Source: Sphaerodactylus townsendi (lineage: Eukaryota). Taken from it: DNA of 64,000 bases. The notes under the pieces are model-generated. The model saw only the letters and a list, made by a program, of their open reading frames with translations. It was not told the origin of the DNA and made no database searches. The stretch's first letter is position 1. Every line of letters starts with the position of its first letter. Location of the stretch: positions 94,922,001 through 94,986,000 of the forward strand of contig NC_059425.1 in NCBI RefSeq assembly GCF_021028975.2, written 5' to 3'. This document shows, piece by piece, positions 4,946-63,912 of this stretch. A program made the translations under genes and the position numbers.

Positions 4946-7900
4946 CTACATTGAGAAAAATAAAAAGAGGTCTGAAGGGAATCATATAACAAGAACATTC
5001 CTGAGTTTCCCATTCAGTTAAATAGACGGGGAGAAGATTAAACACACATCAGTTTCTTTTTTCTGTAGTTTTATATTATTACTTCCTTTTAAATCCTTTA
5101 CATCCTGACTTCCACCATCCTGAAGTGAAGGACAGACCCAGCTCTGCCAAGGACAGACCCAGCTCTGCCTGTAATTTTAAACTCCTGGAACCTTTGCTTT
5201 AAATTATTGCTGTGTAGGATTCTTGACCTTAGGATGCTTTAAACTGCTTTTTTCACATATATTCTTTTTGAGTTGCAGAGCACTTTTCAGGAGAGATATT
5301 CATCATGGAGCCCTAACATAGACCTTATGTCTATGTTATGCATCATATGCAAAGGCATGTTTGTGCATTCTTGTCTGTTTCCGTGTTTCCCCGAAAATAA
5401 GACCTACCCCGAAAATAAGACCTATCATGATTTTTCAGGATTTTTGGAGGAGGTTTAAAATATAAGCCCGACTCCAAAAATAAGCCCTACCGGTAGTTAC
5501 AGATCAGGATGGTGTGATCCAGCAGAGTGCTCCCTGCCAATGAGCATGCAGCTTGCATCACACGTGACAGGGAAGCAACGGGGCTGTAGAGAGCCCGCCT
5601 AAATGTGAAGGTACCATATTTCCCCTAAAATAAGCCCTACCCTGAAAATAAGCCCTAATGCATCTTTTGTTGCAAAAATTAATATAAAACCCTGTCTTAC
5701 TTTCGAAGAAACAAGGTTTTACCTAACTGTATTTTTAAAGTTGTTAGTATTTTGTCATATACTCTAGCAGTCTAGAGAACTGTTAGTGGGCCAACCCCTC
5801 CTGCCTTTCCTTCCCCCCTGGCCCCATGTCACTTTGTCCCTCCTCCTCCTGTTCCTGGGTGCCTGTTCCTCTTCCCAGACACATGCATTGCCACACAACA
5901 GTTAATAGTGCAGCCAGTGGTGGGATCCAAAAATTTTAGTAACAGGTTCCCATGGTGGTGGGATTCAAACTGTGGCGTAGCGCCAATGGGACTGGGTGGG
6001 GCGCCACTCCATGGGGGCTGATGGCTATTGGCATTCCGGGAGCACGGCATTTCTTGCCGGAGACTGTAGCTTGGTAACGACGCAGCAGCTGCGCCATACC
6101 GGGGATCCTTGGAAAGGAAATCGAATGCGCGCGAGGCGCAGCGCCGCCTATACGCACGCGCGTGCACCTAAACGTGCTGGAGCTGCTTCAGAAGGTTCCT
6201 GCGCGCTACTGCTGAGAGGAGGGGCGTAACTAAGGCAAAAATCACGTGGCAAAATCACCAATTAGTAACCCCCTCTCGGCACACACAAATAATTAGTAAC
6301 CTACTCTCGAGAACCTGCTGGATCCCACCTCTGGGTGCAGCTGTCGCTGCCAGCAGTCATGACCCTCCCACAGGGGGCAGATGACACCTGCATATGCTCC
6401 TTCGCAGACAGCTGCGGACAGTACAGTGACTGTAATTATTCAGCAGTTGGGGAGAAGGGCGAGTGTGTAAGAGAGTAAGTGCCACATTCTGCTGTTTTGT
6501 TTTGAGGTTTTTTAAACCTGTTCTATGTAAGCCCTGCCCCCAAGCCGTGTGCATGACAATTGCCTGGAAATGAGTTGTTGCCACCATGGCTAGCCTTTTA
6601 TATAATAGGATAGCAAAAGCACGAATTGTTAAAATTCTAAATAGCTTAAACTTTGACCAAAACTTAGTTTTCCCCCTTGAATGTCATATGTGTTTTTGGC
6701 ATAAGGGTGACAATATTTTCACCTAGCACTACATAGGTACTGAACTGAATGACAACAGTATTGACTGCAAGGTATTTTTAAGCATTTGGCCATGTTAAGC
6801 ATCATACACAGTTCCCACAGCCACACAAATTCACAATTTTGAGATCACATCACATTTATTCCAATCTCTTTGCAGACCACTTGGAGATGCTTCGCCGAGT
6901 AGAAGTGTTCCATGGAACACTGTTTGAGAAACGCTGCTTTAACTTGTAATTCAAAACATCTTTTTTCAATATTCTCATCTATTTTTAAAAAGTTGAAATT
7001 TTCAACCATTACTTACCAAGATATTCTACAAAGCAGTAAATGAGCTGTTTTCAGAAGAACTAAAAAAGAAATAAAACTTTAAGCATCATGCCTTCAGCAG
7101 TTTGACAGAAAGAAAAGAACCCCCCCACAAACAAATAATTGTGAAAATAGTGGAGGGGGGGGGGGGAAATCTCACAAAGGTTGCCTCTTTTTTACTGGAT
7201 GTTCAGAAATTATGAGTTATTCTTAATCTTTCTGCTCCCAAAGCAACATAATTTATCTTTCATTCTTTCAAAAAAATTCTGAGTAACTATAAAGTGATAT
7301 TGATATCTTTGCTGCCCAGATAGGTACTAGCTAGCTTAATAAACACTAAAGTGGTAAGAACTGTCAACTGAGCCCCATGACCAGTCTTCACATTCAAAAG
7401 ATTTCTCATCTGCCATTCCATCTTTCCTTCTACAGTGGGAAGAACTGTTAATTTTCTAGTCTGCTTAAAACTGTTGAAATAAAAAACATCGCAGAGCACT
7501 TTTTAAATTCAGCCTTACAAGATGGAAACATACGTAGAGTGTCCCCCACACAGCAGAAAATGGACAGGGGATACAGGCTGTAAATGTATTATGTTTTAAG
7601 TATATATATTTTTCCTGAACGCATTAATCACGGATACTTATTTTTTTCTAACATCACTAAAAGATGCATGTCATATAAACATTTTCTGCAGGTTTCATGC
7701 TTAACAATAGAGAAAGACAGTAGTTCATGAATGTTACAGGCATGCAGAACTGAGGGGAAAAAATCCAGTTAACAGAATGAGCCACCTGTAGAATTCACAA
7801 ACTTAATTAACAAAAGGCCTAAGAAAGGGGATGCGCCGGACTTCAGGAACCAGAAAATCACAGCAATACCTGATCCACAGAGAAAGGCATCATAGGCAGC

Positions 7901-10900: not shown

Positions 10901-13900
10901 CACCAAGTGGAATTCAAGCAGCTTCAACAATAAGTCCTGAAGCATAAAGGGAGTACACTAGTACAAGAATGCCAAGCCAATTGTAGAGAACTTCGTCAAT
11001 TTTGTGGTATATTTTCTACTACCTTAAAACTCCTGCTGTGAACTTGACAGCATCACAATCAGAATTCCAACTCTGTTATAACTTCCTGACCAGCAGTTTG
11101 CTGAAGAAGCCTTACCTACACATGGCAAAACCCCAGTCTGGCAGAGTCATAAAACCAACTATAAAGAAGGTAATGGAAAAATCACTAATCTGTAAGGCAT
11201 TTATCCTCTTCTGAGAAGATGAATGACAGAAAAGAGAACAAAGTAATTAATTGTTGCTGATTGAATTAATGGGGGGAAGTGTTACTTGGTTTTTGACAAC
11301 TTAAGCAGTGGCTCTCAAGTCACTAGACAGAGGTCTTTCCTAGCCCTAATCCATGAGATTTCAGAAAGTGAATTTAGGACTTTATGCAGATGATCAATAG
11401 TCTCTCTAACTGTGGTAGAGAACTGCGTGGAAGTTCCCTATCTCTGTGTGGAATTGAGCTGCCTGCGGGAGCTCCCCCTTTCTGCGGCTGCCCAAACTGC
11501 ATGGCACCAATACAGTGTCTGTTTGGCTGCCCAGCTTACAGGTAATATTGCAGATGATTAATCTATTCTCCCATTTAGTTGTGAGCTTTTCTCTTGACAT
11601 GAAAAGGGAGTGATAGCTTTGTGGACTAAATGAAAGTAGAAAATGAGAGTTACCTTCCAGATGGCTTTTGCTACATTCTTGGTATCTATTACAATAGGAA
11701 ACAGGATGTGTATGTTCTTTTTAAACTCCTCATAGTCTTCTGAAAATATAAGGAAGGGGAGGGGAGTCAATGCTTGCTTGCCACTGGGCAGGCACTGGAA
11801 ATATAACAGATCTTTAAGGAGAGATAATGAGCAATTATCACCACACCAACATTAAGTCATTTTTACTTGGTTTCTACTACTCAGCATCTGTGCAGAGAAC
11901 TCTGCTTAGAATATTACAATGGGAAGAGCCAGTCAAGAGATAGGGCAGTGGTGGCGAACCTATGGCATGGGTGCCAGAGGTGGTACTCAGAGCCCTCTCT
12001 GTGGGCATGCACAAATAGAGTCCCCCCCCCACACACACACACACACATCTAGGCTGGCCTGGGCCACTGGGCTCGATTATTGGCATTACACCTAAGACCT
12101 GGTTTTGGGGAAGCAGTGTAGGTAACCCTGTTAAGCCCCACTGATTTTCATGCGAAGAACTAAAGCACAATCCTTTACCTGGGAGTAAGCTCAGTTGCTG
12201 GCAATGGGGCTTGCTTCTGAGTAAACCCTCCTAGGGTCGTGATTCACCCGTCGGAAGAGTTGCATGGTTGCTTCAGAGCAAAGCCACCGACTACCACCAA
12301 GCTTACTCCCAAGTAACGCACGCCTCGGAGCCAACTGTTTTTTCTGAACTAAAACCTCAGTATTCAGGTTAAATTGCCGGGTTGGCACTTTGCGATAAAT
12401 AAGTGGGTTTTGGGTTGCAGTTTGGGCACTCGGTCTCGAAAAGGTTCGCCATCACTGAGATAGGGGAAGTAACAGCATATCCGGTGACTAGGGCTGAAAG
12501 GCATTACCAGGAAGAGGATTGTAAAATTTGTCATGTAGATGCAGAAGATCCATCAGCATATTGTGTCCCACCAATGGCTAAAAAGAGAAACAAAGAACAC
12601 TGTCAAGCACATCACAGTAGAACAATGGTAAATAAAAGTAGGCTCCTTTAAGAGAAGGAACAACTCATTTTGCAGTCATGACAAAACATGGGCCTTCCAG
12701 TGATCAGGGTTGTTCCTGGGCTGAAAGCAGCAAGATACTTTGACAAAGCGGGTTCTTCTCCCAAAGCACACAGCATAGCACAACCTCCCCTTGTAAAAGC
12801 ACAGCAACAGGAACTATAAAATAGTTCAAATGTGTAAGGAAGCAAAAAGTATAGAATTCACAGGCCTGTGCTAGTTCTGGATGCTTGAGGGGGATTGCTT
12901 ATCTTCAAGAAAACCAAACCAAGCCAAACAGCATGCGCACAAAAAGCTTCTGAACTGGAGGAGGCGCACTGCTTAGTTTCTCATGTGTCAGTTTCCTAAA
13001 CGCAGAACACAATCCATCATAAAATCCTTAGTGCATTCCACTGCAGTGACATGAACACATAAATCATTAGATTATAAGACATTTGCATTAATTCTGCATC
13101 ACAGTGAGAAAAGTCCTGGCAGAGAGTCAGAAATTCATTAATCCCCCCCCCCCAAGGGTGCGGCTCCATGAATTTTCTTTCCCGGGGAAAATGGGTCCAA
13201 ATGGCTCTTTGAGTGTAAAAGGTTCCCGACCCCTGTTCTAGGCAGTCTTTCAAGTATGTTGGTCCCAAACAGTGTATGGTTCTGAAGGTTAAGACCAGCA
13301 CCTTAAATTGTGCACAGAAATAAATTGGAAGCCAGTGTACGTGGCTCAAGACTGGAGTGATACGACCATTTAGATCTTGCATGTGGAGAGTCACAATGCT
13401 ATTTAAAGAACCAGTTTGAGAAACTCATGCTGCTAATTACTAGCATTCATTTTAACCCCTCTCTTGGAAAGCCTAAGACAAAAAAAATATTATTACAGAT
13501 GATTCCAGGCTCTGGGGTTTACCTTTTTTGCCTCCACAAGTGTCTGGAAAAGGTTGGTAAAACCCCTTGCAGAGAGAAGAATTCGCTCTTTTTGGCAAGC
13601 GTCATAAAAAGTGTTTTCTAGCAACCAGCGACCTCGAGGACTTATCTTCTTCACCATTATCTGAAACAAATCAGTATTAAAATTCAAACAGGTGGGAGGA
13701 AGAGGTTTGCGCCCCATGTATATAAATTTATTTTAAAAATAAAAATGGATAAAAGATTTGGCAGTAGCTGCAAATGTTAACATTATCAATTAAAATAATT
13801 AGAAAAACAAACTAATGCATAAAAACAGGTCTATTTAGATACGTTGACACTGATATATGCTAAGAGGCAGGCTAGTAACATTCGTGTTCTTATCAGGCTA

Positions 13901-16900: not shown

Positions 16901-19900
16901 GAAAACCGAGGTACCACTGTAATTTGTTGTTTCCAGTGAGATTGAAATGCTCTTTTAAAAAGAGACATCCTGAAGTATCTAGTAACTGTTGTTTCAGGGA
17001 GGGACTCCTTCAGAAGGGTTTATATGCAAACCAGCATTGTTAATGCACAGCCATACTTTAATTAAAAACAAAAGACAAGAGAGTCAGGTTTTATCACTGA
17101 ACATACCTTGCTATTAGTGTAACTAAGGAATATTATGGGATTCCATCCATGTCTAGTCACAGGACAGTAGGACCAGCAGCTAGGAAAATTCCCAGGTGAT
17201 AACTAACATATTTCAATTACCTTTCCACACATTTTAATTTGTAAATACATTTTCAGATACCCTTGAACATATATCATTTTAGGAGCACGTACCAGCAAAA
17301 AATAATGGATCTTGTGTCCAAGTTCTCCCCTACTTAACTAAAAACAAAATTTACTTATAACAAGAGATATACCTTGTTGAAGTCAAAACCATAGTGAGCC
17401 AGGAACTTAATACTAAATGCTTGGAAAGAGAATTCAGAATCCATTTGCCCAAATGTTGCAGGGAAGAGGAAAAAGTTATATGAATGTGCCATATACCTGC
17501 AACAAAAGACAGAAAACCTAAGGTCACATTGCATCCAGTGTGCATAATGTAAATATAAGCATTGCTAAGAAAAAATACTTTACTTACTTGTTTGAATTTT
17601 CACTAGAAAATATTGACAATCCTGAAAGAAATGTTTTCAAAATATCAGGCTTACACATATACACACAATATTCTTGGGTACTTATTCATTTCTAGTCTCC
17701 ACATGCATTTATTCTAAAGTTATTTGAGCAGACTGTTAAAGATGCCACATATCTCTCTACCTATTTGCTGAAACTTTTTAGGGGCAAATCATTTGCTCTG
17801 AGGGCCAGATATGACACAGATGTGACTTGGATGGGCCAGGGCAGGGTCGGGGGGCTGCCTTGGTTGTCGAGCCCACAGCAGGCTTACCAGCCCAGATTGA
17901 AATTAGGGTGGGGGTGGCTACCTTGCCTGTCAAGCCTGCAGTGGGCTCACAAGCCAAAAATTGCAGGAGGTGGTGGTGGTGATTGGAACTGAGGTGGTGA
18001 TTGCCTCAGCACACTCACAGCAGGCTCGCCAGTCCAGATCAGCGTGGGGGCTGGTAGTCGGCATGGGGGGCGGGGTGGCTGCCTTAGATGGCGAGCTCAC
18101 AGTGGACTCGCCTGTCCACCATGGCACTGGGGGGGGGGGGATGTTGTCTGACCAGTGAGTCTGCAACAGCCTTTCCAGCACAGATTTGCACTGGGCGAGG
18201 TGGTTGCCTCAGCTGGTGCACCCACAGTAGGCTCGCTAGCTCAGATCAGCACTGGGGAGGTGTAGCTGCCTCAGCTGATGAGCTCACAGCAGGCTCAGAA
18301 TTGCACTGAGGAAGGTGGTCGGCACTGGGAAGGAGTAGCTGCCTCTGTTTGCAAGCCCACAGCAGCCTTGCCAGACCACATCAGAACTGGGGGATATGGT
18401 GAGCGGGGGATGGCTGACTCAGCTGATGAGCTTGCAGCAGTTTCACTAGCCCAGATCAGCAAGGGGCAGAGAGTGGCTCACCAGTGGGCTCACCAGGCCA
18501 GATCGGGAGCACGGGGGCAGGGGTACATGCCAGACCCAATCATGAGTGAGATGGCTTCCTGAACTGATACCTGTGCAGGAGGCTTGCCAGGTCAGATCAG
18601 GAGAGGAGTTTTGTGGGTGTTTGTGTAACCCCTAAGTTAAGAATGGGATGACCCAGAAAGGGGTGAAGTCTGAAAGAAGCAGAAGGCTGCAGAACTCATG
18701 AGGTTGGAGGAAACAAGGCTACCAGGCTGGGACCTGGATATATTATTATAAGCTCTTAACACCTTGTTTAAGGTAACTGCAATGTTGTTAGGAACTAGTG
18801 GAAAGGGAGTTTTTATTTTTGCTATATTGTAAATGTTAGAATTTATTGTTTCAGCATTTTTGTGTATGTAATTGGTGAGAGTTCTTTTGGGGACCTTCAT
18901 CATCTTGAATCCAGTTCACCAAGCCTCTGGAGTCTTCATGAGCCACCCACTTGCAGGAAGAAATGGACTTGGCATTATCAGACTGTAATTAGAAGGACTT
19001 GGAATGAAACTTGAACAGGACCTTGAAGTGTTATGTTAAATGTTAATGTTTCATAAGTGTTATATGTTAAGGAAAAGTAAACCATTTTGTTTAAAATTTA
19101 GTTGTTGCAAACTCCTTCCAAGTTCTGCCCTACAGAACTCACAAGCTGAGGTTACACTTGGACTGGTGTGCCTCAGTGAGGTGGCTTGCTGGATTGATGA
19201 GCTCGCCAGATCAGGAACGTGGTGGGTGAGGGCCTAGTCTGAGGAGCCCACAGAGGGCTCACCAGGCCAGTTGGGGAGTGGTGGAAGGGTTGTGCCAGAT
19301 GGTTTGTGAACCTGATAAGCCTTCTCAAGGGGCTGGATCTGGCCCCTGGGCTGTATGTTTAACCCCCTTGCTTTAAATACATTTTACTTAGAGTTTAAAA
19401 GTGTTTCTAGATTAGAGTTTAAAAGTGTTTCTAGAAAAATGTTTCTCCTAGTACAACACACTATGCTACCCCCATAAAGCTGAGGGAGCAGGTGAATAGT
19501 TGTTTTCGTGTTTTTCATGTTGACCATTTCCACTCCCACCTCCCAAAATCAGTGAGGCATATCTGTTCCCAAGTATGGAAACAGTCTCTCTCTCATGAAT
19601 GCCAGAAAAGTGCTGGGAAAAAAGAATAGCCTTAAAACAGAAGCGCTGTTATGAAAAAAAAAAATCTGGATGCCACACAACAATTCAGTGCATTTATTTT
19701 GTTTGTTACCACCAACCTGGACCTTCAGCTCTTGCACTGAATTAGAGGACATAGCAACAGGAGTTCACTCTGTTCCTTTCCTGTCATGTACCTGTCCTCA
19801 TCTTATACCTGTGCCCCAGGATTTCAGCTTGTCTGATAACAGCAACAAAAATTGCTCACCAAGCTGACACACTGTAAATTGCTGCACGCTCCGTCTGGCT

Positions 19901-21891
19901 TTCTGATACCACTTGCCAGGATAATCATAGAGACTAAAGGGGAGAAAGACAATAATCCATATTGTTCTGGGTGTGGTATATTTCTCCATACTAGTCCTTT
20001 GACTAAATAAACTGACAATTTATTAGGTATACCTGTGCTGTCCACCTGGTAGAAGTGCTGAGTGCAAACCTGTGAATTCCATATCAAAGCCTGCAAAACA
20101 TAAGCGACAAGGGAAAAAAATCTTCTCTGCATTTTTACCACCACAGCTATGAAACCAGTGTCATCAAACAGACTGCACATTCTGTTGGTTTTGTTCTAGT
20201 GCAGGGGTCTGCAACCCGTGGCTCCGGAGCCGCATGCGGCTCTTTCGTCGTTGTACTGCAGCTCCGCAGACTTGGGACCTGAATAGCCCATGAAAGGGCG
20301 AAGCAAAATAAAATGGGAGAAGGGAATAAAAGGCATTGGAGACAAAGAGCCTCCAAGCCTAGTCCCATTTTGTTTCTGTTTTATACGCGATGCTTTCCCT
20401 CTTTCCTTCGGCCCCGCATAATGGTGTCTATGGGAACCCGAAGTGCGCACTTGCGTGGAACTCTTGTTATTCAATGTCATTGCACAGAGAGGGTTTGGGT
20501 GGGTGGAAGTGATGTTTTTGCCGCCTTCCCTCCTGGCAGGGATGAAGCTGGTGAGCTGGAACGTGAACGGGCTCTGGGCCGGACCGGGGCCTACGGTGGC
20601 TCTTGGAGGCATTGGACGCAGGTGTGGTCTGCTTGCAGGAGACCAAAATCACCCGTGAGTCCTGGCGGGTGAGCATGCAGGGGAGAAGCCATAGGAGGCA
20701 GGGTCAAGCGTTCACACGTGCAAGAGAGCAGGGGATAGGAGAGGAGGATGGCCTGCACCTAGGGTTGCCAAGTCCAGCTGGGAAATTCCTGGAGATTTAA
20801 GAGTGGAGTCTAGGGAGGAGAAGAGCATCAACGGGGTATAACAGCATAGAGTCCACTCTTCAAATCAGACCTTTATTTTCCTGGATCCTGATCTTCAGGG
20901 GAATGGGTTCTATAGTCTGATGAGTTGCAATTCCATGTGGTCCCCAGGCCCTACCTGGAGGTTGCCAACCACAGCATGTCAGGTTGCATGTTGTGGGTTT
21001 TTCCATTGTGAGTGCCCCTTTTAGGGTTACCAACCACCTGGAGGAACAAAACTCTCCTGCCTGCTTAATAGCACTTCATAGATTTCATAAGCAACACACT
21101 ATAACTGTTTATACAAAGCGTAAAGCTTAAAAAAACAATATATACAGTGTTATCTTCATTTTAAATGTCAAAAAGTATTTGCAGCTCCAAGTGTTTTCTT
21201 TTCTGTGGTAAACGGGTCCAAATGGCTCCTTGGGTGTTAAAGGTTGCCGACCCCTGTGCTAGTGTAACTATGTGATTCCATTTGCAACTTTTCCCCCTTC
21301 TCCCAAGGTGTTCAGGGTGGCACACGCGGTTTTCCTGCCTTCCATAAATTCCATTTTATTCTCAGAACAAGCCTGCGAGGTAGGCAAGAATGAAATCAAG
21401 CATGACTGGTGACAGTGAGCTATACAGTTCCATGGGAACAGCCTGACAGTTCAACCACGTTACCAGAAGGAAAAAATCCAGAAACTTTAGTTTGGTGACT
21501 GTGTGAGACAACTGCAAGCACTGCGGTCTCCCACGTTTCCCGGACCAACTAAACGTCCATTAAATTGTGCAGTGAAGCCAAACTACCAAGGGCGGAAGCT
21601 GAAATAAGTGAAGCTCACTTATGGGTAAATGTTCACAGGACTGAGCTGTACGACCTGTGGTGTAGTTATTCGGTCCCCCCTTCTGCTCTTTCCTCCCTGC
21701 CCTTGTCGCTAAAACGAGGCCCGCCCGGCCTAGCTCTTCAATCCTTTCCGCCTGGCTCTGAGAGGAGTCGCTTCCATGGCTGATCTTCCCTCCCAACCCT
21801 CTGGGCCTGCCTCACCGACAAAATCGCAGCCACAAATGAGCTTTCGCAACGTCGGCAGCATCTCCTCAAACTCGGCAGCACCGACATCCAT
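4846..21891 (-). CDS. PNLDC1: PARN-like ribonuclease domain-containing 1 (pre-piRNA 3' trimmer), coding exons 1-16 (416 codons); remaining 3' exons lie left of the window
   Basis: Spliced translation MDVGAAEFEEMLPTL...GFDMEFTGL...PLVGHNMLMDLLHLH...FPHEAAYDAFLCGS...YVNQVNLIRARIQKI matches PNLDC1; DEDDh residues intact; all introns GT-AG and phase-consistent; synteny with MRPL18/TCP1/ACAT2. Confidence 0.95.
5381..5716. mobile_element. Tc1/mariner (Tc2/pogo-like) MITE
   Basis: Imperfect TIRs CCGTGTTTCCCCGAAAATAAGAC / GTCTTACTTTCGAAGAAACAAGG; internal AAAATAAGCCCTAC repeats. Confidence 0.75.
5915..6333. mobile_element. Non-autonomous hAT element
   Basis: TIRs CAGTGGTGGGATCCA / TGGATCCCACCTCTG; 8-bp TSD agtgcagc/ggtgcagc. 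Confidence 0.85.
7017..7059 (-). CDS. PNLDC1: PNLDC1 exon 15
   Basis: VLLKTAHLLLCRIS, donor gtaagt. Confidence 0.88.
7870..7923 (-). CDS. PNLDC1: PNLDC1 exon 14 (catalytic HxxxxD)
   Basis: ATKKFPHEAAYDAFLCGS. Confidence 0.94.
8475..9125. repeat. Long imperfect inverted repeat (foldback / MITE-like) in PNLDC1 intron 13
   Basis: 8624-8726 is the approximate reverse complement of 8920-9022, 8776-8808 of 8884-8915, 8496-8520 of 9080-9104; centre CAGCTTG-tcagttt-CAAGCTG. Confidence 0.85.
9372..9436 (-). CDS. PNLDC1: PNLDC1 exon 13
   Basis: DLNPTNASCPEVFHASDCLRY. Confidence 0.9.
9580..9770 (+). mobile_element. 5S-derived SINE (5S-Sauria-like), degraded
   Basis: GTTAGTACTTGGATGGG 5S internal promoter segment followed by a GGCAATGGCAA..CACTTCTG Sauria/RTE-like tail. 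Confidence 0.65.
10009..10041. repeat. (AAGT)n microsatellite
   Basis: Direct reading. Confidence 0.9.
10294..10349 (-). CDS. PNLDC1: PNLDC1 exon 12
   Basis: ECEFPHASNLLEVFELLCS. Confidence 0.88.
11654..11739 (-). CDS. PNLDC1: PNLDC1 exon 11
   Basis: EDYEEFKKNIHILFPIVIDTKNVAKAIWK. Confidence 0.93.
11946..12457. mobile_element. Non-autonomous hAT element
   Basis: TIRs CAGTGGTGGCGAACCT / AGGTTCGCCATCACTG; perfect 8-bp TSD AGATAGGG. Confidence 0.92.
12508..12577 (-). CDS. PNLDC1: PNLDC1 exon 10
   Basis: PLVGHNMLMDLLHLHDKFYNPLP. Confidence 0.94.
13140..13390 (-). mobile_element. Right end of a hAT-Charlie-type element (to 13235) inserted into an L2 LINE 3' fragment
   Basis: AAGGTTCCCGACCCCTG followed by ttctaggc; adjacent minus-strand [31 protein letters not shown] is typical of the L2 ORF2 C-terminus. 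Confidence 0.7.
13523..13660 (-). CDS. PNLDC1: PNLDC1 exon 9
   Basis: IMVKKISPRGRWLLENTFYDACQKERILLSARGFTNLFQTLVEAKK. Confidence 0.93.
14131..14210 (-). CDS. PNLDC1: PNLDC1 exon 8
   Basis: FQMFEIQLVLRKALQDIWTVPLGNQE. Confidence 0.92.
14425..14525 (-). CDS. PNLDC1: PNLDC1 exon 7
   Basis: VTDKDRLKEVIDKVTFWVSSAEEGESMVLHDIYG. Confidence 0.9.
15416..15504 (-). CDS. PNLDC1: PNLDC1 exon 6
   Basis: FLKAGIPYVNEAQENKLQQDLLSGDWAVRS. Confidence 0.93.
16388..16919. mobile_element. Tigger/pogo-type MITE with internal palindromes
   Basis: TIRs CAGTGGTACCTC / GAGGTACCACTG flanked by TA on both sides. Confidence 0.9.
17373..17496 (-). CDS. PNLDC1: PNLDC1 exon 5
   Basis: YMAHSYNFFLFPATFGQMDSEFSFQAFSIKFLAHYGFDFNK. 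Confidence 0.93.
17588..17621 (-). CDS. PNLDC1: PNLDC1 exon 4
   Basis: GLSIFSSENSNK, 34 bp, donor gtaagt, phases fit neighbours. Confidence 0.85.
17779..19370. mobile_element. Old hAT non-autonomous element with an internal ~60-bp GC-rich tandem array, interrupted by a solo LTR
   Basis: Degenerate ends AGGGGCAAATCATTTG...GAGGGCCAGAT and ATCTGGCCCC...TGTTTAACCCCCTTG; repeated GGTGGCTGCCTCAGCTGATGAGCTCACAGCAGGCTC-like units on both sides of the LTR. Confidence 0.65.
18624..19156 (+). mobile_element. Putative solo LTR (533 bp)
   Basis: TGTAACC...GGTTACA termini; near-TSD tttg/cttg; AGTAAA near 19076; AT-rich block interrupting the tandem array. Confidence 0.65.
19860..19933 (-). CDS. PNLDC1: PNLDC1 exon 3
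   Basis: LYDYPGKWYQKARRSVQQFTVCQLG. Confidence 0.92.
20033..20090 (-). CDS. PNLDC1: PNLDC1 exon 2 (catalytic DxE)
   Basis: GFDMEFTGLHSALLPGGQHS, ag/gt flanks. Confidence 0.92.
20202..21256. mobile_element. Non-autonomous hAT (Charlie-type) element carrying captured host sequence
   Basis: TIRs CAGGGGTCTGCAACC / GGTTGCCGACCCCTG; 8-bp TSD ttctagtg/tgctagtg; subterminal GCGGCTC motifs. Confidence 0.88.
20542..20654 (+). pseudogene. APEX2-like (ExoIII/AP endonuclease) exon-1 fragment inside the hAT element
   Basis: MKLVSWNVNGLWAGP(+1 frameshift)GLRWLLEALDAGVVCLQETKIT followed by a phase-1 GTGAGT donor. Confidence 0.75.
21816..21891 (-). CDS. PNLDC1: PNLDC1 coding exon 1
   Basis: MDVGAAEFEEMLPTLRKLICGCDFV-G, donor gtgagg. 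Confidence 0.9.
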
Positions 21892-23059
21892 CCTTTCTGC
21901 CCCTCTCTTAACCCTGCAACACGCGCTGTTATTCCCGCCCCATTTTTTTTAAAGACACAGGCGGTCTTGCAACTGAGGGAGGACCCAACACGGCAGTGAA
22001 ACTCCTCTCGCCTCCCCTCAGCCTTTAAAGGGATTATCTCAATTTGTGTCTCGTTCACCCTGACGGAATTGTAATACTGTCTGGTTACATTTTATTATTA
22101 CGACTTCAGTACCGTTTAAATAGCTTCAGGGCAGGGCATACAAACGTTCAGTCAGTTATTAGAACAGCATGGCAAGAAAAGCTTCACCTGTTGAATTTCC
22201 AACATGCAGTTGGTGCACAGATGGGGATCGTGCCAAAAATGGGGGGGGGGGGAACAACTGTACAAAACAATTGTATTCATTTGCTAATGTTCTAATACCT
22301 CAGAACGTGGAACCAAATTCAGATAACTTCAGTGGAACTTATTTGATGCCCCTTCTGCTTTTACCCTGTTCCAAAAAGAACACATGTGTTCCAGCCATGG
22401 GGCTGGCTTAGTTAAGTATTCTAGTCTAATGGATCTATTGCCAGCAATCATAAAAATGCAGGACAAAGCAAACAAGAAGAGATCAGAAAGGAGTATGGGA
22501 AAGGGGAATCTTATTTCCCTTGCTTATTTCCTCTTTCCCTTTCCTGAAAATCCCCATAGCCCTTTTCTGCTTCCTCTCTTTTTTACCAGTCGACATACTT
22601 TTATTTCCCACCCCCACCTTCAAATTTTCCTCCTTCCTGCCCCCTGGCAGCCTCTCTCCAGAATGTCTGGCCCAGCTGGAGAGAGTGTGTGATGCTGGCT
22701 AGATTGGGTCCAATTGTAGCAGAGAACATGTAAATAGTTGCAAGGGCATCTTATTTTCCCTCCATATGCAATTTCCTTGCTCTCGTCCTGGCAATCCCCT
22801 CCCTTCTCATTCATCAGCAAACCAAGCTTTTACCTGCCCCTGCCCATTTTCAAGTGTATTTTCACTTACTGCATATATATCCCATCTTTCTCCAGAATGG
22901 AGAACCAAAACATCATTCTTCCCTATCCTCATAACCCTGAGAGGTAGGTTAGATCGAGACTGTGTGACTGGCCCAAAGTCACCCCAGAGAGCACAGTGAG
23001 AATTCAAACCTGGTTCTTACAGATCCTAATCTGATACTCTAGTCACAAGCAAGCAAGCA

Positions 23060-27200: not shown

Positions 27201-29695
27201 GTGGGTGAAGATTCTTTTTGTTTTGTTTAGCATATCCCAATATTTATTATTGACCCTTCTCCCTAGTTTTGGTTTTATGTCTGTTTATATATTCAGTTAT
27301 TTTGAACATACTTTATTTTAATGTATTGTCAAAGGCTTTCATGGCTGGAATCACTGGGGTGCTGTGTGGTTTCTGGGCTGTATGACCGTGTTCTAGCAGC
27401 ATTCTCTCCTGACGTTTTGCCTGCATCTGTGGCTGGCATCTTCAGAGGATCCTCTAGCCCAATACTTCATTTTAGCTGTTGTTTTAGAAAACAAAGAAGA
27501 GTTTGGATTTTTACCCCCCTTTTCTCAACCCAACTAAAGACGAAAGGCAGCTTACATAATGTGGTTAAAAGCCCCGTTAAAACATACAATCCTAAAAACA
27601 TAAACATTAAAAAACACTATAAAAATATCCTTTAAAAACAGTCAATAAAAACATCATTAAAAATCCCCATCCCACCCTTCAGCTGGGATCGATGCAGGGG
27701 GTCCTGGAGGTCACACATTGAAGACCTGGGTAAAGAGGAAGGTTTTAAACAGCGCTGAAATCCATAAAGTGTAGGCGTCTGACGAATTTCTGCAGGGAGG
27801 CTGTTCCACAGCTTGGGCCTACCACAGAAAAAGCCCTCCCGCCACACCTCGGCAGCAGAAGGGATCACCACTTGATCTCTGTGCATGGGCTGGCTCATAT
27901 GGGCGTAGGCACTCCTTTAGGTAGGTGGGACCCAAGCAGTGGTGGGATTCAGCAGGTTTGCACCACTTCAGCAGAACCAGTTGTTAAAATGATGCTTGTA
28001 AACAACTAGTTGTTAAATTATTTGAATCCCACCACTGGACCCAAGCCATTTAGGGCTTTAAATATTATTGTCAAATATGATTGGGCTGTGCCGTTTATGT
28101 AAAAGAGAAAGGAATCAAACCTGGTTCTCCAGATGAGAGTCCACCTGCTCTTAGCCGCTACACCACTCTAGCTGTCAATCATGGTAGATAAAAAATCAAT
28201 GATTTTTAAAATTTATATTGGTTTTTTAAATAAAATGCCTTTTGAGGAAAATCTATGTAAATATATCTTCTGTTTAAGCCACTTTATAGTGCAAAGGTGG
28301 CTCATGATGACATAAAAATTAGGGTTTTTTATTATGTAGCATGAGGGTGTAAATTCATGAAATGTTTAAATTTTGTGGTTAATGGATTATGTTAATCCAT
28401 TCACAATGTCATGCTCTTCTGGAGGTTTCTGTAAGATTATTTTGGGCAATTTTTCTATCTTAGAAGATACTATCACAGATGCTTGGTTTTGCAGTTGTTG
28501 AAACTGAATTTGTATCTGCAGAGATAACATGTCTCTTCTTCATGGAAAAGATGTTAAAAAATAAACAGAGTCCTGAAAAAGACCTAATCCCCATTGTTCC
28601 TTTGCAAATCTATGTACATAGAATCAACCCCTTAACTCTTGGGCACTACACTTAGTTGCACAAAAGTGTCCCTGATCTTCCCAACCCAATAAGGAAAACC
28701 AAAGCACAGCTTCTGTTAATTATATGTCTAGGTTGTATTGGGTTTTCCAGGCTGTGTGGCCGTGGTCTGGTGTATCTTGTTCCTAACGTTGCGCCTGCAT
28801 CTGTGGCTGGCATTTTCAGAGGTGTATCACAGAGGGAAGTCTGTTACACACTGTGTCCAGTGAGAAGGGAATGTTTTAGTGGGATATAAATTTTCATGTC
28901 CCGGGGGGTGGGGGGGGAACCAATCAGTAAATGTTTAGGTGGAACTTGCTATGCAGATGTGTGGTTGATAGTATAGTATTGCAGGTGGGGGTTTTCAGTC
29001 CAGGGAGTGATTCACATTAGCATTATTCACATTATGCCTTCAAAAATACATAGTACGGCTTATGTTTGCAGAAACATACTTAAAATCAGTGTGGTAGAAC
29101 CAAAGTAAGTCAGTTAGGCAGTGAGAAGCTTGAGATGGTCTAACAGATAGCAATATTTCAAACTGCAGGCGGAGAATCACATTTTGGAATGCTCACTAAT
29201 GTTAACATAATGCTGCAAACAGAATACACACTTCACACGCACAGAGAACAGATAGACGTTGGCACCGTGCTACACGATCTATAGATTTAAAAAAAAAATA
29301 CAAAAAACATTCAGTTGAAATACAAACGACAGTCTGAAGCAGTTCCATCCAATTTATCACAAAGTCCATGCACCTCGTTCTCCTGCATGTGTGGACCAAG
29401 GCTTGCTTTAAAATGAATTCCTCATAAGTGAATCACGAGCCTGCTAAATCCCACCACTGCTCATAAGTGAATCAAGCTAGTTCTCAAGGCAAAGTGTTCA
29501 GGAGGACACAGCTATAAGAAGCAGAACCTCCCAATTTCTTGTACGGGATTCACTTCCCCAGTTTCCTCTGAGTTTCTTATAAACTTTGAGCGCTTCTACG
29601 GGCAACTCACACTCCCAGGGGTCTGTACCTTGACCAGCTTTCCGGAATCCCCAAGGTATAATTCGCAGTTGCAAAGCCGATCTTCTCAGTGCCAT
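24228..29695 (-). CDS. MRPL18: Mitochondrial ribosomal protein uL18m, 4 coding exons, about 186 aa
   Basis: [25 protein letters not shown]; [15 protein letters not shown]...[15 protein letters not shown]; C-terminus [14 protein letters not shown]; AATAAA at 24167-24172 (-). Confidence 0.96.
24692..24926 (-). CDS. MRPL18: MRPL18 exon 3 (followed by a GC donor)
   Basis: [12 protein letters not shown]...PWEKHSDS|gcaagt. Confidence 0.92.
25916..26102 (-). CDS. MRPL18: MRPL18 exon 2
   Basis: TQFSSAV...[31 protein letters not shown]. Confidence 0.94.
27325..27452 (-). mobile_element. Penelope-like element terminus with decayed hammerhead core
   Basis: Minus strand TCCT-CTGAAGA-TGCC..GGC-AAAAC-GTC-AGGA; related copies near 28730, 47320, 49170 and 55075. 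Confidence 0.7.
27640..28070 (-). mobile_element. L2 LINE 3' fragment interrupted by a 101-bp hAT MITE
   Basis: [25 protein letters not shown]. Confidence 0.65.
27937..28037. mobile_element. 101-bp hAT MITE
   Basis: Perfect TIRs CAGTGGTGGGATTCA / TGAATCCCACCACTG; perfect TSD GACCCAAG. Confidence 0.93.
28180..28640 (+). mobile_element. 5'-end fragment of the same hAT family as 1-2221, opposite orientation
   Basis: CATGGTAGATAAAAAATCAATG terminus; 28390-28640 is a diverged reverse complement of ~1730-1975. Confidence 0.8.
28730..29030 (-). mobile_element. Penelope-like terminal fragment
   Basis: GCCTGCATCTGTGGCTGGCATTTTCAGAGG shared with 27325-27452. Confidence 0.6.
29629..29695 (-). CDS. 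MRPL18: MRPL18 exon 1 (targeting peptide; alternative in-phase donor after 29611)
   Basis: [23 protein letters not shown], Arg-rich and lacking acidic residues, phase-1 donor gtacag. Confidence 0.8.
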
Positions 29696-30710
29696 CCTAC
29701 CAGGATGGTGATGGCCAACAAACGCACCGCAACTAAGAGACGCTAAGTAGAACCATCTTTACGAAGGGAACAAAATTATTTGATGTCGTCACCATTTAAG
29801 TTTCTACGCCGATCACAAAAGAAAGAAAATAGAATTTTAGCCCTGAACAAAAATGGCGCCACCTAAATTGGCAGCGTGTATACCGCTATTTCTGATTGGT
29901 CACTTCAAGTAGGTCCGTCTTCTTTCATTTTAGCAACGTCCTATCCAGCCAACAGCGACTCCGGAATAATGTGAGGCTCGCTGAGATTTCAGTCATATCC
30001 GGCGCAGTCTTTTATTGTCACAGCTCCCCCTATTTTGTTGGGTGGGTCACTGGTATCCTCCAGCCCCAGAGCGGGAGAAAAACCACGCTCCGCTTATTTC
30101 TTTTTTTAGGAGTTGAAGTCCACAACGATCTAACGTGCAGTAAAAAGCTGAAAAGCGCACAAACCACTTCTTTTCAAGAAGCCACAAGTTGTTTGGGTTG
30201 CTGATGCCCCCCCCGCCCCCCGGGGGAAGCTGTTCAAAGGTCACGCAATAGCAACTGAGGCGAGAAAACGAAAATGTGGGTGTCACTTTAGAACACTGGA
30301 GGGGGCGGAGAAGAAATTGCTGAGATTTATCAGATTCCGGCGGTTCCCCTCACTCTGGAGAAGCCACGCCCCCTCACTGTCAATCGTTTTCTAGAATCGC
30401 CGAGAACGCATGTAACTGTCACTTCCAGCTTCTGGCTGGCCTCGCTTGTTGCCGTGCAACGGGGACGACGTTCTCATTTGTTTAACGCACGACCTATCAG
30501 CGTCCAAAACTGAACCGACCGAGTTGTTACGAGTCTCGGAATTGGTTGCTTTCCTTCTACCACAGCTACTTCCATTGGCTGTTTCCATTCTTCTGTTTCC
30601 TCCTTGAGCCAGACGCCATTTTGACAGCCGGGATTACCCAGAAAGCATCGCGTGGTGAGAGAGCTGAGCGGAGGACGCACGTTGCTCCTTCGGTCTCTTT
30701 GTAGGAAAAG
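29696..30710. promoter_or_regulatory. Bidirectional CpG-rich promoter / 5' UTRs shared by MRPL18 and TCP1
   Basis: Divergent ATGs at 29695(-) and 30711(+); CpG-rich; YY1-like AAAATGGCG (~29850) and CGCCATTTT (~30614); ATTGG CCAAT boxes (~29896, ~30541, ~30574); GC box GCCACGCCCC (~30363); TTCTAGAA at 30389-30396. Confidence 0.8.
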
Positions 30711-30783
30711 ATGGCGGCGCTGGAGGGGCCCTTGGCGGTCCTCGGAGACCGGGGCACCGGGGAGACCGTTCGCTCCCAGAACG
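30711..30783 (+). CDS. TCP1: TCP1 exon 1
   Basis: [24 protein letters not shown]. Confidence 0.93.
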
Positions 30784-33700
30784 GTAAAGAAAAGGACTCT
30801 TCTTGTGTTTTCATTCATCTATCCCGTTTTCTGGAGATTTAACGGTCGCGCTGTTGCCTCTTATTCGTCCCTCGTGTGAGGCCAGTTGGGGCGCGCACAC
30901 GTGACAAAGCGGGGCGGCTTTTCTGGTCATGCCTGACTCCGGAGTAGGCGGGCGTGTGAAGGGCGGGGTGCCGAGTGGCAGAGTGATGCCCCCCCCCTTG
31001 GTTCAGCAGGGTAAAAGCTGCAGTTTCGTCAGGCGAAACGGTGACCCAACCTTACCAGATCCTATGTGATCCTACTGCTCTCCTGTAACACAGCTAGATT
31101 TTATCTACGTGCAGCAGGAGATAGTCTTGTAATGGGCTTATCAGGGTGTTCGCCTGTTCACTATCCTTCAAATAACTAATCGTTCACCGTAACTCGTTTG
31201 CTGCGTTCACATATGAACACACATAGTCACGTAGGAGACTAAGGATTTCTTAGTCTCCTGATCTAGCAGGGTCATATTTTGCAGTCTGTGAGTACTAGTT
31301 ATAATCCACGTGACAAAGAAGTTCATGCTTTCAAGATTTTGCTTATACTGTATACGTATATTAAGTTTCTTTGTCCTCATGTTCACACCTTTGCAGTACT
31401 TGGTAATCCACGACCATAAACAGAATAAACACACAGCACTCCTGGTGAGCTTTAATAAAAAGTGTTTGCTGAGTGACTGAGGTGGTGAAGTTGTTGCAAC
31501 TGTTAATCTGGATCTGTTTTTTTTTTGTAGCTTGAAAGATTGTTATTTCATTAGCAACTTTAAGAATAATTTCATAAGCGTTTATATATACATTATGTGG
31601 ACTAGTGTGAGCAAAACATCAATAACTTCCATTTATTATGCTTATTGAAATTGTAAAATTGGTTTTTATATAGTGGTTTTTACTGGTAATAGTTATTTAA
31701 AATAATTTATTTTTACTTATTTTGTTTACAACAGGCAATTTTCATCCCAGTCAGGGCCATAAACAATTAGAATAATAAAAAATACTTCCTAATTGTGTTA
31801 AAATAGTTAAAATATGTATATAAAACCAAAATATATAAGACAACAAAAGCCTAAAGCAGGAATGAAGGATCACTGAGGGAGCACCTTTTGGTAGAAGACA
31901 ATGATAGACGAAGAGGAGTAATAATTCTATTAACAAATTGTTTAATTAATGCGTTGTATCGGTGTACATAGATAGTGCCTCTGACCTCAAAGATTATTTA
32001 GAATCTGTGTCCAAACACGAGATGCATCATTCCCATTCTACTACCATTTATATATGTTACACATTAAGTGGTTATGCTTATGGGATACAGGAAAGCTTGT
32101 CAGAGTCTGAAGGGGAAGATTGGTGATATCTTCTTCCTATATGAACTGGCAGTACAATCTTACATTTCACACATGTCACTGACTTGGGTTCACATAGTTC
32201 TTCACTGTAGCCACTGTATATCTGACAAAGAATGATTTGATTGAACTTGTATGCCTATGAGATGCCTTAGTTATGAAATTGAGTGTGAACCATAAAATAG
32301 CTATATGTGTAGATTCAGCTCATGTGATCTACCCATTGTGAAAAAAGGATGGATGGACTGCATGAAGGGCCTGGCGCATAGGTTTACAATACAGATAGTG
32401 CATAACCTAAAAACTTGTTCGTTTTCACTTGTGTGATACAACCTACATGTTGAGAACAAGATCATGGTAAACAAAGCACTTTCAGTCTTGAATTTGGGGA
32501 TCTTCCCAGAACTGTTTTGCTTTCTTTAACTGTTTTGAATTACTGTATTGTGAAGAAATTGTATTTTTCCTTAACTGAAACAGTTATGGCTGCTGCTTCC
32601 ATTGCCAACATTGTAAAGAGTTCCCTTGGTCCAGTCGGTTTGGATAAAATGTTGGTGGATGACATTGGTGTAAGTAAACATTATTTCCTATGAGAAGGGA
32701 TTAGAGGAACAAATGCTGTGCAGTCAGTTGATAAATATTCCAAATGAAAATTTATTGATTTTTTTTCTATAAAGATGTGTAACCTTTGCACGACACCTCA
32801 CACCATTTGACTGTGAGATATATAGTAACTTTATCATCTTTAGTATTCTTAAGGTTTTAATATATTGGTTTTTTATATGGTACACATTTTTGTAAACAGA
32901 AGCCAATGGCTTTCTTGCATCTACATGAAGAATTCTGATGTATTAAATAAATTCTGTTTATTGTAAGCAAATAATTTGCATAAAAATTATTGTCAACAGA
33001 ATAAAAGCATTCATTAACAGCAGTGTTGATGTTTGCAGTAGGCATGTCAAGCTGAGAAACCATCCTCAGCGGACTTGCAAATACAAACATTATCTACATG
33101 TCCAGAAGAAAGAATTACTGGCCTGGTCACATCAAATTTGTGAATAAGAAAGAAACAATGACAAGGCTATAGCAGCAAATCCCTTCCTATGCTCCTCATA
33201 AATTGTCTTCATTCTGTTTAATGAGGTTTACTCCTATTAAGGTGTGTAGGATAGCTGTATTAGCTATTCAAATGGTTCAGGGATGTGAATGGACAAATAA
33301 AACACAGTAAAATGAATATCTATGAATTATTACAGAAGTTTATTAAGAAAAGCAATGCATCCTTACCCAAAAAGCACTTGTCATGCAGCCATCTAACTAA
33401 TAGTGTTTGCATAACTCTTTGTCAGTGTTTTTTTTTATTCAGATTATTATATTTCATGACCAAAGTTAAGTGAGCATAAATAATTCTTATACCATGTTTG
33501 GATAACTAGGATGTGACCATTACAAATGATGGTGCAACCATTCTGAAGTTGCTGGAGGTAGAGCATCCTGCTGCAAAAGTTTTGTGTGAACTAGCAGATC
33601 TACAAGACAAAGAAGTCGGCGATGGGACCACCTCTGTGGTATGTATGGATATTCAACTCAAAGATTTTGACAGAAAGTCATTCTTCCATACTGTTGACAT

Positions 33701-42907: not shown

Positions 42908-57752
<14,845 letters not shown>

Positions 57753-57990
57753 GATGACCGCTCACGCGCCGTTTAGTTCTGCTGCAACCACTCCGCGCCT
57801 CAGGGTCTCCGGGTCTCAAAGCTTCGCTTCGTCTCACGCCCACTGCTAGGAACTCGCGCTCCCATTGGCTATAGCGAACTACTCCCTCCCGCCCGCGCCC
57901 CTTCATTACCAAGATCTCGTGAACGGGCTCGTGACAAGCGAGAGCCCGCGGATTGGCTGATTGAACGAAGGGTTGAGGGTCGCGGTCAGA
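57753..57990 (-). promoter_or_regulatory. ACAT2 5' UTR / CpG-rich promoter
   Basis: CpG-rich stretch directly upstream of the ATG with ATTGG boxes (~57864, ~57952) and a GC box CCCGCCC (~57888). Confidence 0.7.
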
Positions 57991-63709: not shown

Positions 63710-63912
63710 GGTTGCCAGCGGCGGATTGGGAAACTGCTGGAGATTTTGGGGGTGGAGACTGGAGAGGGAGGGGTTGATACCTCAACATGGTAAATGCCAT
63801 AGAGTCCACTCTGCAATTAGCGGCCATTTCCTCCAGGGTAATTGATGTATGTAGCTTGAAGATCAGGAGAAGTGGGAGGTCTCCAGGACTCACCTGGATG
63901 TTGGCAAGCCAG
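63710..63912. mobile_element. Old MITE with AGGTTGCCA/TGGCAA termini
   Basis: Similar to 20760-20970 (CTGGAGATTT, CATAGAGTCCACTCT shared). Confidence 0.6.

Follow-up and report, generated by a model that had tools for sequence, protein, structure and literature searches.

In plants, much exon shuffling stems from cut-and-paste DNA transposons that capture gene fragments. In animals such capture seemed rare and nearly always single-copy, which left open whether animal Pack elements truly transpose. The question is raised by a 1055-bp unit at positions 20202-21256 of a 64-kb stretch of the genome of the dwarf gecko Sphaerodactylus townsendi (64,000 nucleotides of contig NC_059425.1, here termed the window, to which all coordinates refer). 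An earlier description made from the sequence alone, the original prediction, proposed that the unit is a Pack-hAT, that is, a hAT-type DNA transposon carrying a genomic piece of an APEX2-like gene. The analysis described here places the unit in a hAT family that is non-autonomous, occurs in multiple copies and carries DNA derived from a gene; the unit is therefore probably a Pack-hAT. The copy in the window is probably a decayed one in which the ends of a hAT miniature inverted-repeat transposable element (MITE), ~60 bp at the 5′ side and ~120 bp at the 3′ side, enclose ~0.8 kb of gene-derived cargo. The cargo is best read as CpG-rich upstream DNA, coding exon 1 with its splice donor from a nuclease gene of the ExoIII family of APE2 type (APEX2-like), and intron-like DNA with an older MITE.

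Boundaries and mobility of the unit

The unit is bounded by the terminal inverted repeats (TIRs) CAGGGGTCTGCAACC at 20202-20216 on the forward strand and CAGGGGTCGGCAACC at 21242-21256 on the reverse strand, which are complementary at 14 of 15 positions. A search of the 64-kb window with the TIR 15-mer produced five matches with up to three mismatches compared to 1.47 expected by chance, and only the two ends of the unit matched with no more than one mismatch. The 8-mers immediately outside the TIRs, ttctagtg and tgctagtg, are identical at seven of eight positions and constitute a candidate target-site duplication (TSD). Thus, the TIRs and the 7/8 TSD that were originally proposed to bound a 1055-bp unit were confirmed. 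The abundance and surroundings of the unit were assessed with Logan contigs from four runs (X1, X4, X5, and X6) of four differently labelled gecko organisms (A to D), which were aligned to 19850-21600 at ≥80% likeness; 32 of about 23,600 contig pieces were listed. None of the RNA runs contained this region. The target consensus of the hAT ends was the 8-bp palindrome GTCTAGAC on both sides, as derived from 125-191 different flanks per end in each of runs X1, X4, and X6, with none listed for X5. An 8-bp target of the nTnnnnAn type is a defining mark of hAT insertions. The unit displays a TSD with a consensus of this type together with short TIRs, of the about 10-25 bp class, that begin with YARNG. 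As the target consensus of the family is itself GTCTAGAC, the match between the two flanking 8-mers is partly expected anyway. No hAT transposase was found in the unit or in the 64-kb window.

Contig depth is no true copy number, and counts of distinct contigs were used instead. The flanks of the unit behaved as single-copy DNA with summed depths of 20, 18.5, about 10 (9.9), and 35 in the four runs, and the flank contigs of run X1 had no mismatches to the window, so that X1 probably represents the source species. At the 5′ end of the unit (20204-20262), summed depth was ~10,000-fold the flank value in each of the four runs, and depth at the 3′ end (21148-21265) was 4,000-32,000 times that of the flank. 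The abundance of the interior was intermediate, above single copy and below that of the ends: summed depth across 20322-20734 was 325-830 in X1 and was comparably raised in X4, X5, and X6, and depth across 20971-21029 was ~11-fold that of the flank. Distinct contigs with a letter other than that of the window at positions 20372, 20476, 20538, and 20647 numbered 12-18 in X1, with the highest value at the exon site 20647 (18 contigs). The corresponding counts at variable sites were 8-16 in X4, 1-9 in X5, and 7-14 in X6. The 12-18 contigs of X1 cannot derive from the window locus and, if two alleles are allowed per locus, therefore represent at least 6-9 other loci.

The diverged contigs also connect the parts of the unit. 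Contigs at 5-14% mismatches tile 20205-20835 and 20845-21257, with X6 records 30 and 31 covering 20845-21071. A 2227-nt contig (X4 record 10) covers 20205-20345, passing from the cargo at 20345 through the 5′ TIR, and continues for ~2 kb beyond the TIR; the cargo thus is linked to the 5′ TIR in another locus. Joints at 20515>21185, 20518>21184, 20584>21139, and 20596>21213, several of which were present in three organisms, fuse the exon region to the 3′ hAT end and mark internally deleted relatives of the unit. Other subfamilies part from the window copy at 21069, 21129, and 21137. Shared cargo and ends, differing flanks and the hAT target signature are together what would be expected of a transposed family and, as far as contig data allow, exclude a reading of two unrelated ends. 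The dispersed copies with shared TIRs and cargo that the original prediction anticipated were thus partly borne out: diverged copies with these ends and this cargo exist in four organisms, and the flanks of the window copy are single copy.

The original prediction had itself raised the possibility that the two TIRs are independent insertions. In its full form, this explanation holds that there is no single mobile unit, that two independent hAT MITE ends bracket resident DNA, and that the nuclease-like peptide arose by chance. With ~10^4 copies of the ends, some pairs are bound to lie within 1 kb of each other by chance, and the GTCTAGAC target preference alone partly yields a 7/8 'TSD'. However, the interior is multi-copy and the flanks are single copy with the change located at the TIRs, contigs of diverged copies link the interior to both ends, and the peptide match described below has an E-value of 3.5e-8. 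The explanation is scarcely credible, and independent insertion of the two TIRs was not borne out.

The window insertion is common to organisms A, B, and D, in which flank contigs enter both TIRs with 0-17 mismatches. The window copy is fixed and common to three closely related organisms. An empty site was not seen in the four organisms among the matches listed; the flank contig of organism C, which is 87% identical to the window flank, stops short of the insertion point.

A search for a second full copy of the unit in the 64-kb window recovered no more than one isolated 3′ end that belongs to this hAT family. This end spans about 80 bp at 13159-13241, is 83% identical to 21180-21262, and terminates in ...GACCCCTG followed by ttctaggc; a matching 5′ TIR is absent upstream. 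The hAT 5′ end (20198-20270) weakly resembles the mir-9209 precursor of Rfam (34 bits compared to a 90-bit cut-off, E=6.7e-5), which probably reflects a MITE-type hairpin and not a microRNA gene.

Identity of the captured gene piece

The motif SWNxNG...DxxCLQETK is the N-terminal signature of ExoIII/APE enzymes. In the unit, frame A from the ATG at 20542 reads MKLVSWNVNGLWAGPGP; the +1 frame gives GLRWLLEALDAGVVCLQETKITR and then meets GTGAGT (20655-20660), and a second GT donor, GTGAGC, lies at 20669. When a 30-aa piece was used in phmmer searches of 1.84 billion representative proteins, one real relative was recovered, P0002 (UniRef100_A0ACB8GBN4), a 97-aa 'uncharacterized protein' of S. townsendi that corresponds to a paralogous copy with both exon halves in one frame. 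No full-length APE2 was returned by this search, and the other matches (P0001, P0003, and P0004) were discarded as repetitive or low-complexity chance hits. The ExoIII/APE-type peptide from ATG 20542, the frame break and the phase-1 GTGAGT donor at 20655 were all as originally described. In contrast, the frameshift is probably not a single extra G, the removal of which had been suggested to restore the frame: the natural in-frame variants differ from the window by other lengths. Some contigs carry GTGGG behind 20592 (+5 nt), which places both halves in one frame, and the P0002 peptide implies ~8 extra nt at the site of the break. Most contigs show the broken frame of the window.

The affiliation of the peptide was examined against the PDB. 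The 42-aa +1-frame piece of the window matched residues 17-40 of chain 6wcd_A with an E-value of 0.001, followed by ExoIII and Crc chains at E>0.1. Residues 1-42 of P0002 aligned with residues 1-40 of 6wcd_A at 36.5 bits (E=3.5e-8), compared to 26.5 bits for Bacillus-type ExoA, 26.0 bits for zebrafish APE1, 23.4 bits for human APE1, and 14.1 bits for Escherichia coli ExoIII. The APE1 chains aligned to P0002 from residues 20-62 at 23-26 bits. The 6wcd_A chain, which we take to be the catalytic domain of Xenopus laevis APE2, is a 355-residue apurinic/apyrimidinic endonuclease chain as shown, with the motif from residue 1, and reads ...LDSLDADIICLQETKVTRD. A literature search for the PDB code 6WCD and for the TIR sequences yielded nothing useful. 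The peptide has the N-terminal features of APE2, namely the ExoIII fold from Met1 without an APE1-type extension, and the motif LDxLDAxxxCLQETK(V/I)TR(D/E). In Pfam, the N-terminus of P0002 fell on positions 1-52 of PF03372 with an E-value of 8.8e-4, under the curated cut-off; a search with two very short window pieces produced nothing relevant.

Open reading frame 2 (ORF2) proteins of long interspersed nuclear elements (LINEs) also start M-K-x-x-S-W-N-x-N-G-L and have a C/L-Q-E-T motif. The ExoIII-like segment might on these grounds be the endonuclease start of a non-long-terminal-repeat ORF2 (L1-like, MK.ISWNVNGL) that is nested in, or was captured by, the hAT element. Moreover, squamate LINE clades are absent from the PDB, and a PDB search cannot exclude all of these. 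Nevertheless, P0002 matched 46 APE/ExoIII chains in the PDB and no LINE endonuclease chain up to E=10, and the motif reads QETK-ITR(E/D) as in the APE2 chain, and not QETH. The homology stops 40 residues in, where a GT donor stands, and no later endonuclease motif is present in any frame. LINEs usually are truncated at the 5′ side and not at the 3′ side, and the segment has no surrounding poly-A or second TSD. A LINE source is therefore very unlikely: the truncation on the 3′ side, the QETK motif and the lack of a LINE match each argue that the cargo is not of this type. A LINE ORF2 endonuclease as best match, which the original prediction had considered as the opposing outcome, was not observed among PDB chains, and its preference for an APEX2-like over an L1 nuclease is upheld by the match to the APE2-type chain. 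The lack of poly-A and of a second TSD around the exon segment equally does not bear out a nested retrocopy, the other origin of the cargo that had been contemplated.

The homology has a sharp limit. Relatives retrieved with P0002 (proteins of 53-170 aa) were ExoA fragments from bacteria plus a single read-through of exon 1 from a eukaryote. None of the relatives of 57-160 residues, whether bacterial or eukaryotic, aligned beyond the first ~40 residues in any window frame, and similarity ends at GTGAGT. Only exon 1 is present in the window, which lacks the remaining catalytic domain as well as the PIP box and a C-terminal Zf-GRF. The segment thus is a piece of such a gene and not the gene, as expected for a captured fragment. 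The donor and the intron-like DNA behind it further indicate that the cargo is not complementary DNA, in agreement with the capture of genomic DNA that had been proposed. A real APEX2 gene in the window was considered and ruled out, as downstream APEX2 exons were not found there. The unrelated eukaryotic ENA contig k141_1333338 (L001, positions 612-848), which is AT-rich, contains an APE2-like first exon (MKLVSWNVNGIRA...CLQETKIT) with an ORF that leaves homology at A|GTAAGA, a possible donor, in the same codon as the gecko donor. This coincidence is weak evidence for conservation of a phase-1 intron.

No nuclease can be encoded by the exon, which retains ~40 of the ~300 residues of the catalytic domain, carries a frameshift, and has Trp in place of the conserved Arg in the NGLRA motif. 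Both Trp residues of the window peptide are also present in the paralogue P0002 and the changes therefore are older than both copies. In 6wcd_A, the residue opposite the second Trp is Glu and not Arg, so that the initial view of both Trp codons as consistent with CGG decay of Arg holds for one at most. Past ...ITRESWR, P0002 continues as unrelated sequence, the outcome expected if the second donor, at window position 20669, is the one used in this gene model, as it apparently is. Residues 46-76 of P0002 faintly resemble window 20995-21087 (E=0.32), and the whole P0002 model may lie inside one element copy.

On the upstream side of the exon, the observed/expected CpG ratio is 0.61 in the upstream cargo and 0.61-0.68 across the upstream 250 bp and the exon, compared to 0.27 for the whole window. 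This elevation would fit a CpG-island promoter, and the cargo putatively includes promoter DNA. On the downstream side, X1 record 6 (20633-20835) and X6 record 29 (20545-20801) cross the donor-proximal intron-like DNA at ~90% identity and enter the nested MITE, which belongs to the TAGGGTTGCCAA... family, at the same position. Because this point of entry from the exon and the intron-like DNA is identical, the MITE was inside the unit before the spread of the latter. The older repeats predicted in the interior were thus substantiated as the MITE at 20760-20973 and a fragment at ~21021-21045. The interval 20974-21136 could represent additional cargo or, alternatively, hAT interior that is specific to a subfamily. 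A very abundant MITE whose ends are of the TAGGGTTGCCAAC type is represented by copies or fragments at 20760-20973, 21021-21045, and 63727-63816; most genomic copies of this MITE have a different interior (joints from ~20796-20819 to ~20944-20949). Long ORFs across the cargo on both strands lacked Pfam matches and were taken as chance ORFs in GC-rich DNA.

Origin of the chimera and known captures

Template switching, at a stalled fork or in the course of repair of the double-strand gap that excision leaves, would have brought a copy of the gene piece into a hAT element, with the host's own APEX2 as the presumed source. The chimera then may have been moved in trans by a hAT transposase that recognized the shared ends, with formation of 8-bp duplications at GTCTAGAC-like targets, and could in this way have spread to at least a dozen distinct copies and internally deleted derivatives.

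In a variant of this history, the unit would have arisen through internal deletion from an autonomous hAT element in which the APE2-type promoter, exon 1 and donor served as the leader of the transposase; the cargo would then be the 5′ portion of this master element and no passive freight of a MITE. The unit keeps exactly the promoter-like region, exon 1, the donor and the start of the intron, and several internal deletions join the 5′ part to the 3′ end in the classic pattern of deletion derivatives. On the other hand, the window and the contig pieces listed contain no transposase sequence, the tail of P0002 is not transposase-like, and no longer copy is present among the contigs listed. This variant is unlikely and, as it still needs capture of a gene fragment, would refine the Pack-hAT explanation and not replace it.

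Several observations weigh against the Pack-hAT explanation as set out here. Among the contigs listed, no second copy was resolved base by base over its full length, with the two TIRs and a TSD of its own, and the depth values in Logan contigs are not true copy numbers. The APE2 assignment is based on ~40 residues and a 10-bit margin, with a Pfam score below the curated cut-off. Colinearity with a parent APEX2 locus of S. townsendi across promoter, exon 1, and intron 1 is presumed, and the limits of the cargo relative to subfamily-specific hAT interior are approximate. The cargo in organism C (X5 records 17-19) is nearer to the window copy, with 8 mismatches in 173 nt, than is the presumed orthologous flank, with 30 in 239 nt: the cargo diverges from the window copy by ~5% in record 18 and ~10% in record 19, and the presumed left flank by ~12.5%. 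This closeness of the cargo is odd for a purely vertical, old family. The discrepancy could be due to later activity, horizontal transfer, conservation, or a flank contig that is not orthologous.

Families of hAT elements are well-known horizontal travellers among tetrapods. The cargo accordingly might have been taken from the APE2-type gene of another host, with the chimera reaching geckos by horizontal transfer and no colinear parent here. The cargo of organism C at ~5% from the window copy, with the presumed orthologous flank at ~12.5%, is the observation that favors this route. However, the nested MITE family is very deep in all four gecko runs, which suggests that the captured DNA is gecko DNA, and the flank contig of organism C may be non-orthologous. 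A foreign source is highly improbable.

The Pack-hAT explanation can be placed alongside previously described captures. A screen of 100 animal genomes (Tan et al., 2021, Nat Commun 12:4280, PMC8277862) detected 370 Pack-TIRs, among them 12 in human and 38 in alligator; 208 of the 370 are on hAT elements. Multi-copy cases amounted to four of the 370, three in Xenopus tropicalis and one in alligator, with a frog example on three chromosomes (PMC8277862). Anolis (anoCar2), the sole squamate in the screen, had no Pack-TIRs and almost no TIR elements scored (PMC8277862). The proposed origin of Pack-TIRs is gap filling or fork-stalling/template-switching-plus-transposition (FoSTeST), and multi-copy cases favor GC-rich cargo (PMC8277862). 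The expectation that such capture is rarely reported in amniotes consequently was overstated in view of the human and alligator examples and the 208 Pack-hATs overall; what is rare is multi-copy amplification. The gecko unit resembles animal Pack-hATs in being a non-autonomous hAT TIR element with a gene-derived interior and no transposase and, as noted for multi-copy cases, GC/CpG-rich cargo (PMC8277862). It differs in that the gecko family comprises at least 12-18 distinct cargo contigs in X1 plus deletion derivatives, whereas the animal Pack-TIRs are multi-copy in only the four cases (PMC8277862). The definition of a Pack-TIR also requires a parental copy (PMC8277862), which for the gecko element is a presumed one. 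Gene-piece capture by hAT elements thus is already known in animals. The new aspects here are the host group and the degree of amplification, with no lizard case of multi-copy gene-piece capture on record.

Likenesses extend to other transposon classes. Plant Pack-MULEs and Pack-TYPE elements likewise are TIR transposons that amplify intron-containing genomic gene fragments, most of which are non-functional (PMC8903248, PMC5861414). Unlike the gecko unit, the plant elements are Mutator or CACTA and not hAT, have another TSD length, and reside in plant hosts. They also often combine fragments of several genes, whereas one gene piece is recognizable in the gecko unit. Bat Helitrons are said to have captured a promoter and first exon in the case of NUBPL. 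As in the gecko, the bat elements are amniote DNA transposons that amplified the promoter, 5′ untranslated region, first exon and donor of a housekeeping gene and that may seed chimeric transcripts (Thomas et al., 2014, PMC4224331). However, Helitrons are rolling-circle elements without TIRs or a TSD, capture DNA by read-through, and reach far higher copy numbers.

A squamate hAT family with the 5′ end of one gene at probably a dozen or more loci provides a clear amniote case of capture followed by transposition. The copies also form a natural series in which the possible birth of chimeric transcripts from a mobile cassette of promoter, first exon and donor can be studied. In addition, at least one S. 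townsendi 'uncharacterized protein' (A0ACB8GBN4) is transposon cargo, and APEX2-like hits in geckos need filtering. A broader proposal, which is tentative and rather doubtful, is that dwarf-gecko hATs have acquired 5′ cassettes of housekeeping genes (promoter, first exon and donor) on repeated occasions. As mobile leaders, these cassettes would either drive a master transposase, with the present unit as a deletion derivative of the master, or trap host exons into chimeric transcripts, with A0ACB8GBN4 as one such product. In the trapping role, if true, the cassettes would splice into downstream host exons and chimeric transcripts would occur at a dozen or more loci.

Feature map and other parts of the window

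The features of the unit are compiled in Table 1.

Table 1. Positions of the features that make up the Pack-hAT unit and its immediate borders in the window
Feature	Position	Strand	Basis and remarks
Left TSD copy, ttctagtg	20194..20201	.	Flanking 8-mer; family-wide consensus GTCTAGAC
5′ terminal region of hAT MITE family, with 15-nt TIR (20202-20216) and palindromic subterminal motifs	20202..20262	+	TIR search; contig depth
Upstream cargo, CpG-rich, putative promoter and 5′ untranslated region	20263..20541	+	Observed/expected CpG; diverged contigs tile the region; boundary with hAT end uncertain
APE2-type exon 1 remnant, ~38 codons	20542..20654	+	Frame A 20542-20592; +1 frame 20588-20654; break near 20588-20593
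Two GT donors: GTGAGT at 20655 (phase 1, in the Arg codon after KIT) and GTGAGC at 20669	20655..20674	+	Sequence; P0002 model
Intron-like DNA behind the donors, within the amplified unit	20675..20759	+	X1 record 6; X6 record 29
Older nested MITE, TAGGGTTGCCAA... family	20760..20973	.	Paralogous contigs enter it at the same position; ends hundreds of times deeper than flank
Remaining interior, with fragment of nested-MITE family at ~21021-21045	20974..21136	+	Depth ~11-fold at 20971-21029; X6 records 30 and 31
3′ terminal region of hAT MITE family, with TIR (21242-21256)	21137..21256	+	TIR search; depth; 83% identity to solo 3′ end
Right TSD copy, tgctagtg	21257..21264	.	Flanking 8-mer

Elsewhere in the window, CpG-rich patches were noted at 29501-31250, 57251-58250, 5751-6500, and 21501-22250, with observed/expected ratios of 0.65-1.1 compared to 0.27 for the window; no hAT-type TIR pair or long ORF of known content was found at these patches. 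A 156-aa ORF on the reverse strand at 45123-45593 has a Cys/His-rich end (...CEYC...LEHILLVCP...) and is presumably the C-terminal tail of a CR1/L2-type LINE ORF2.

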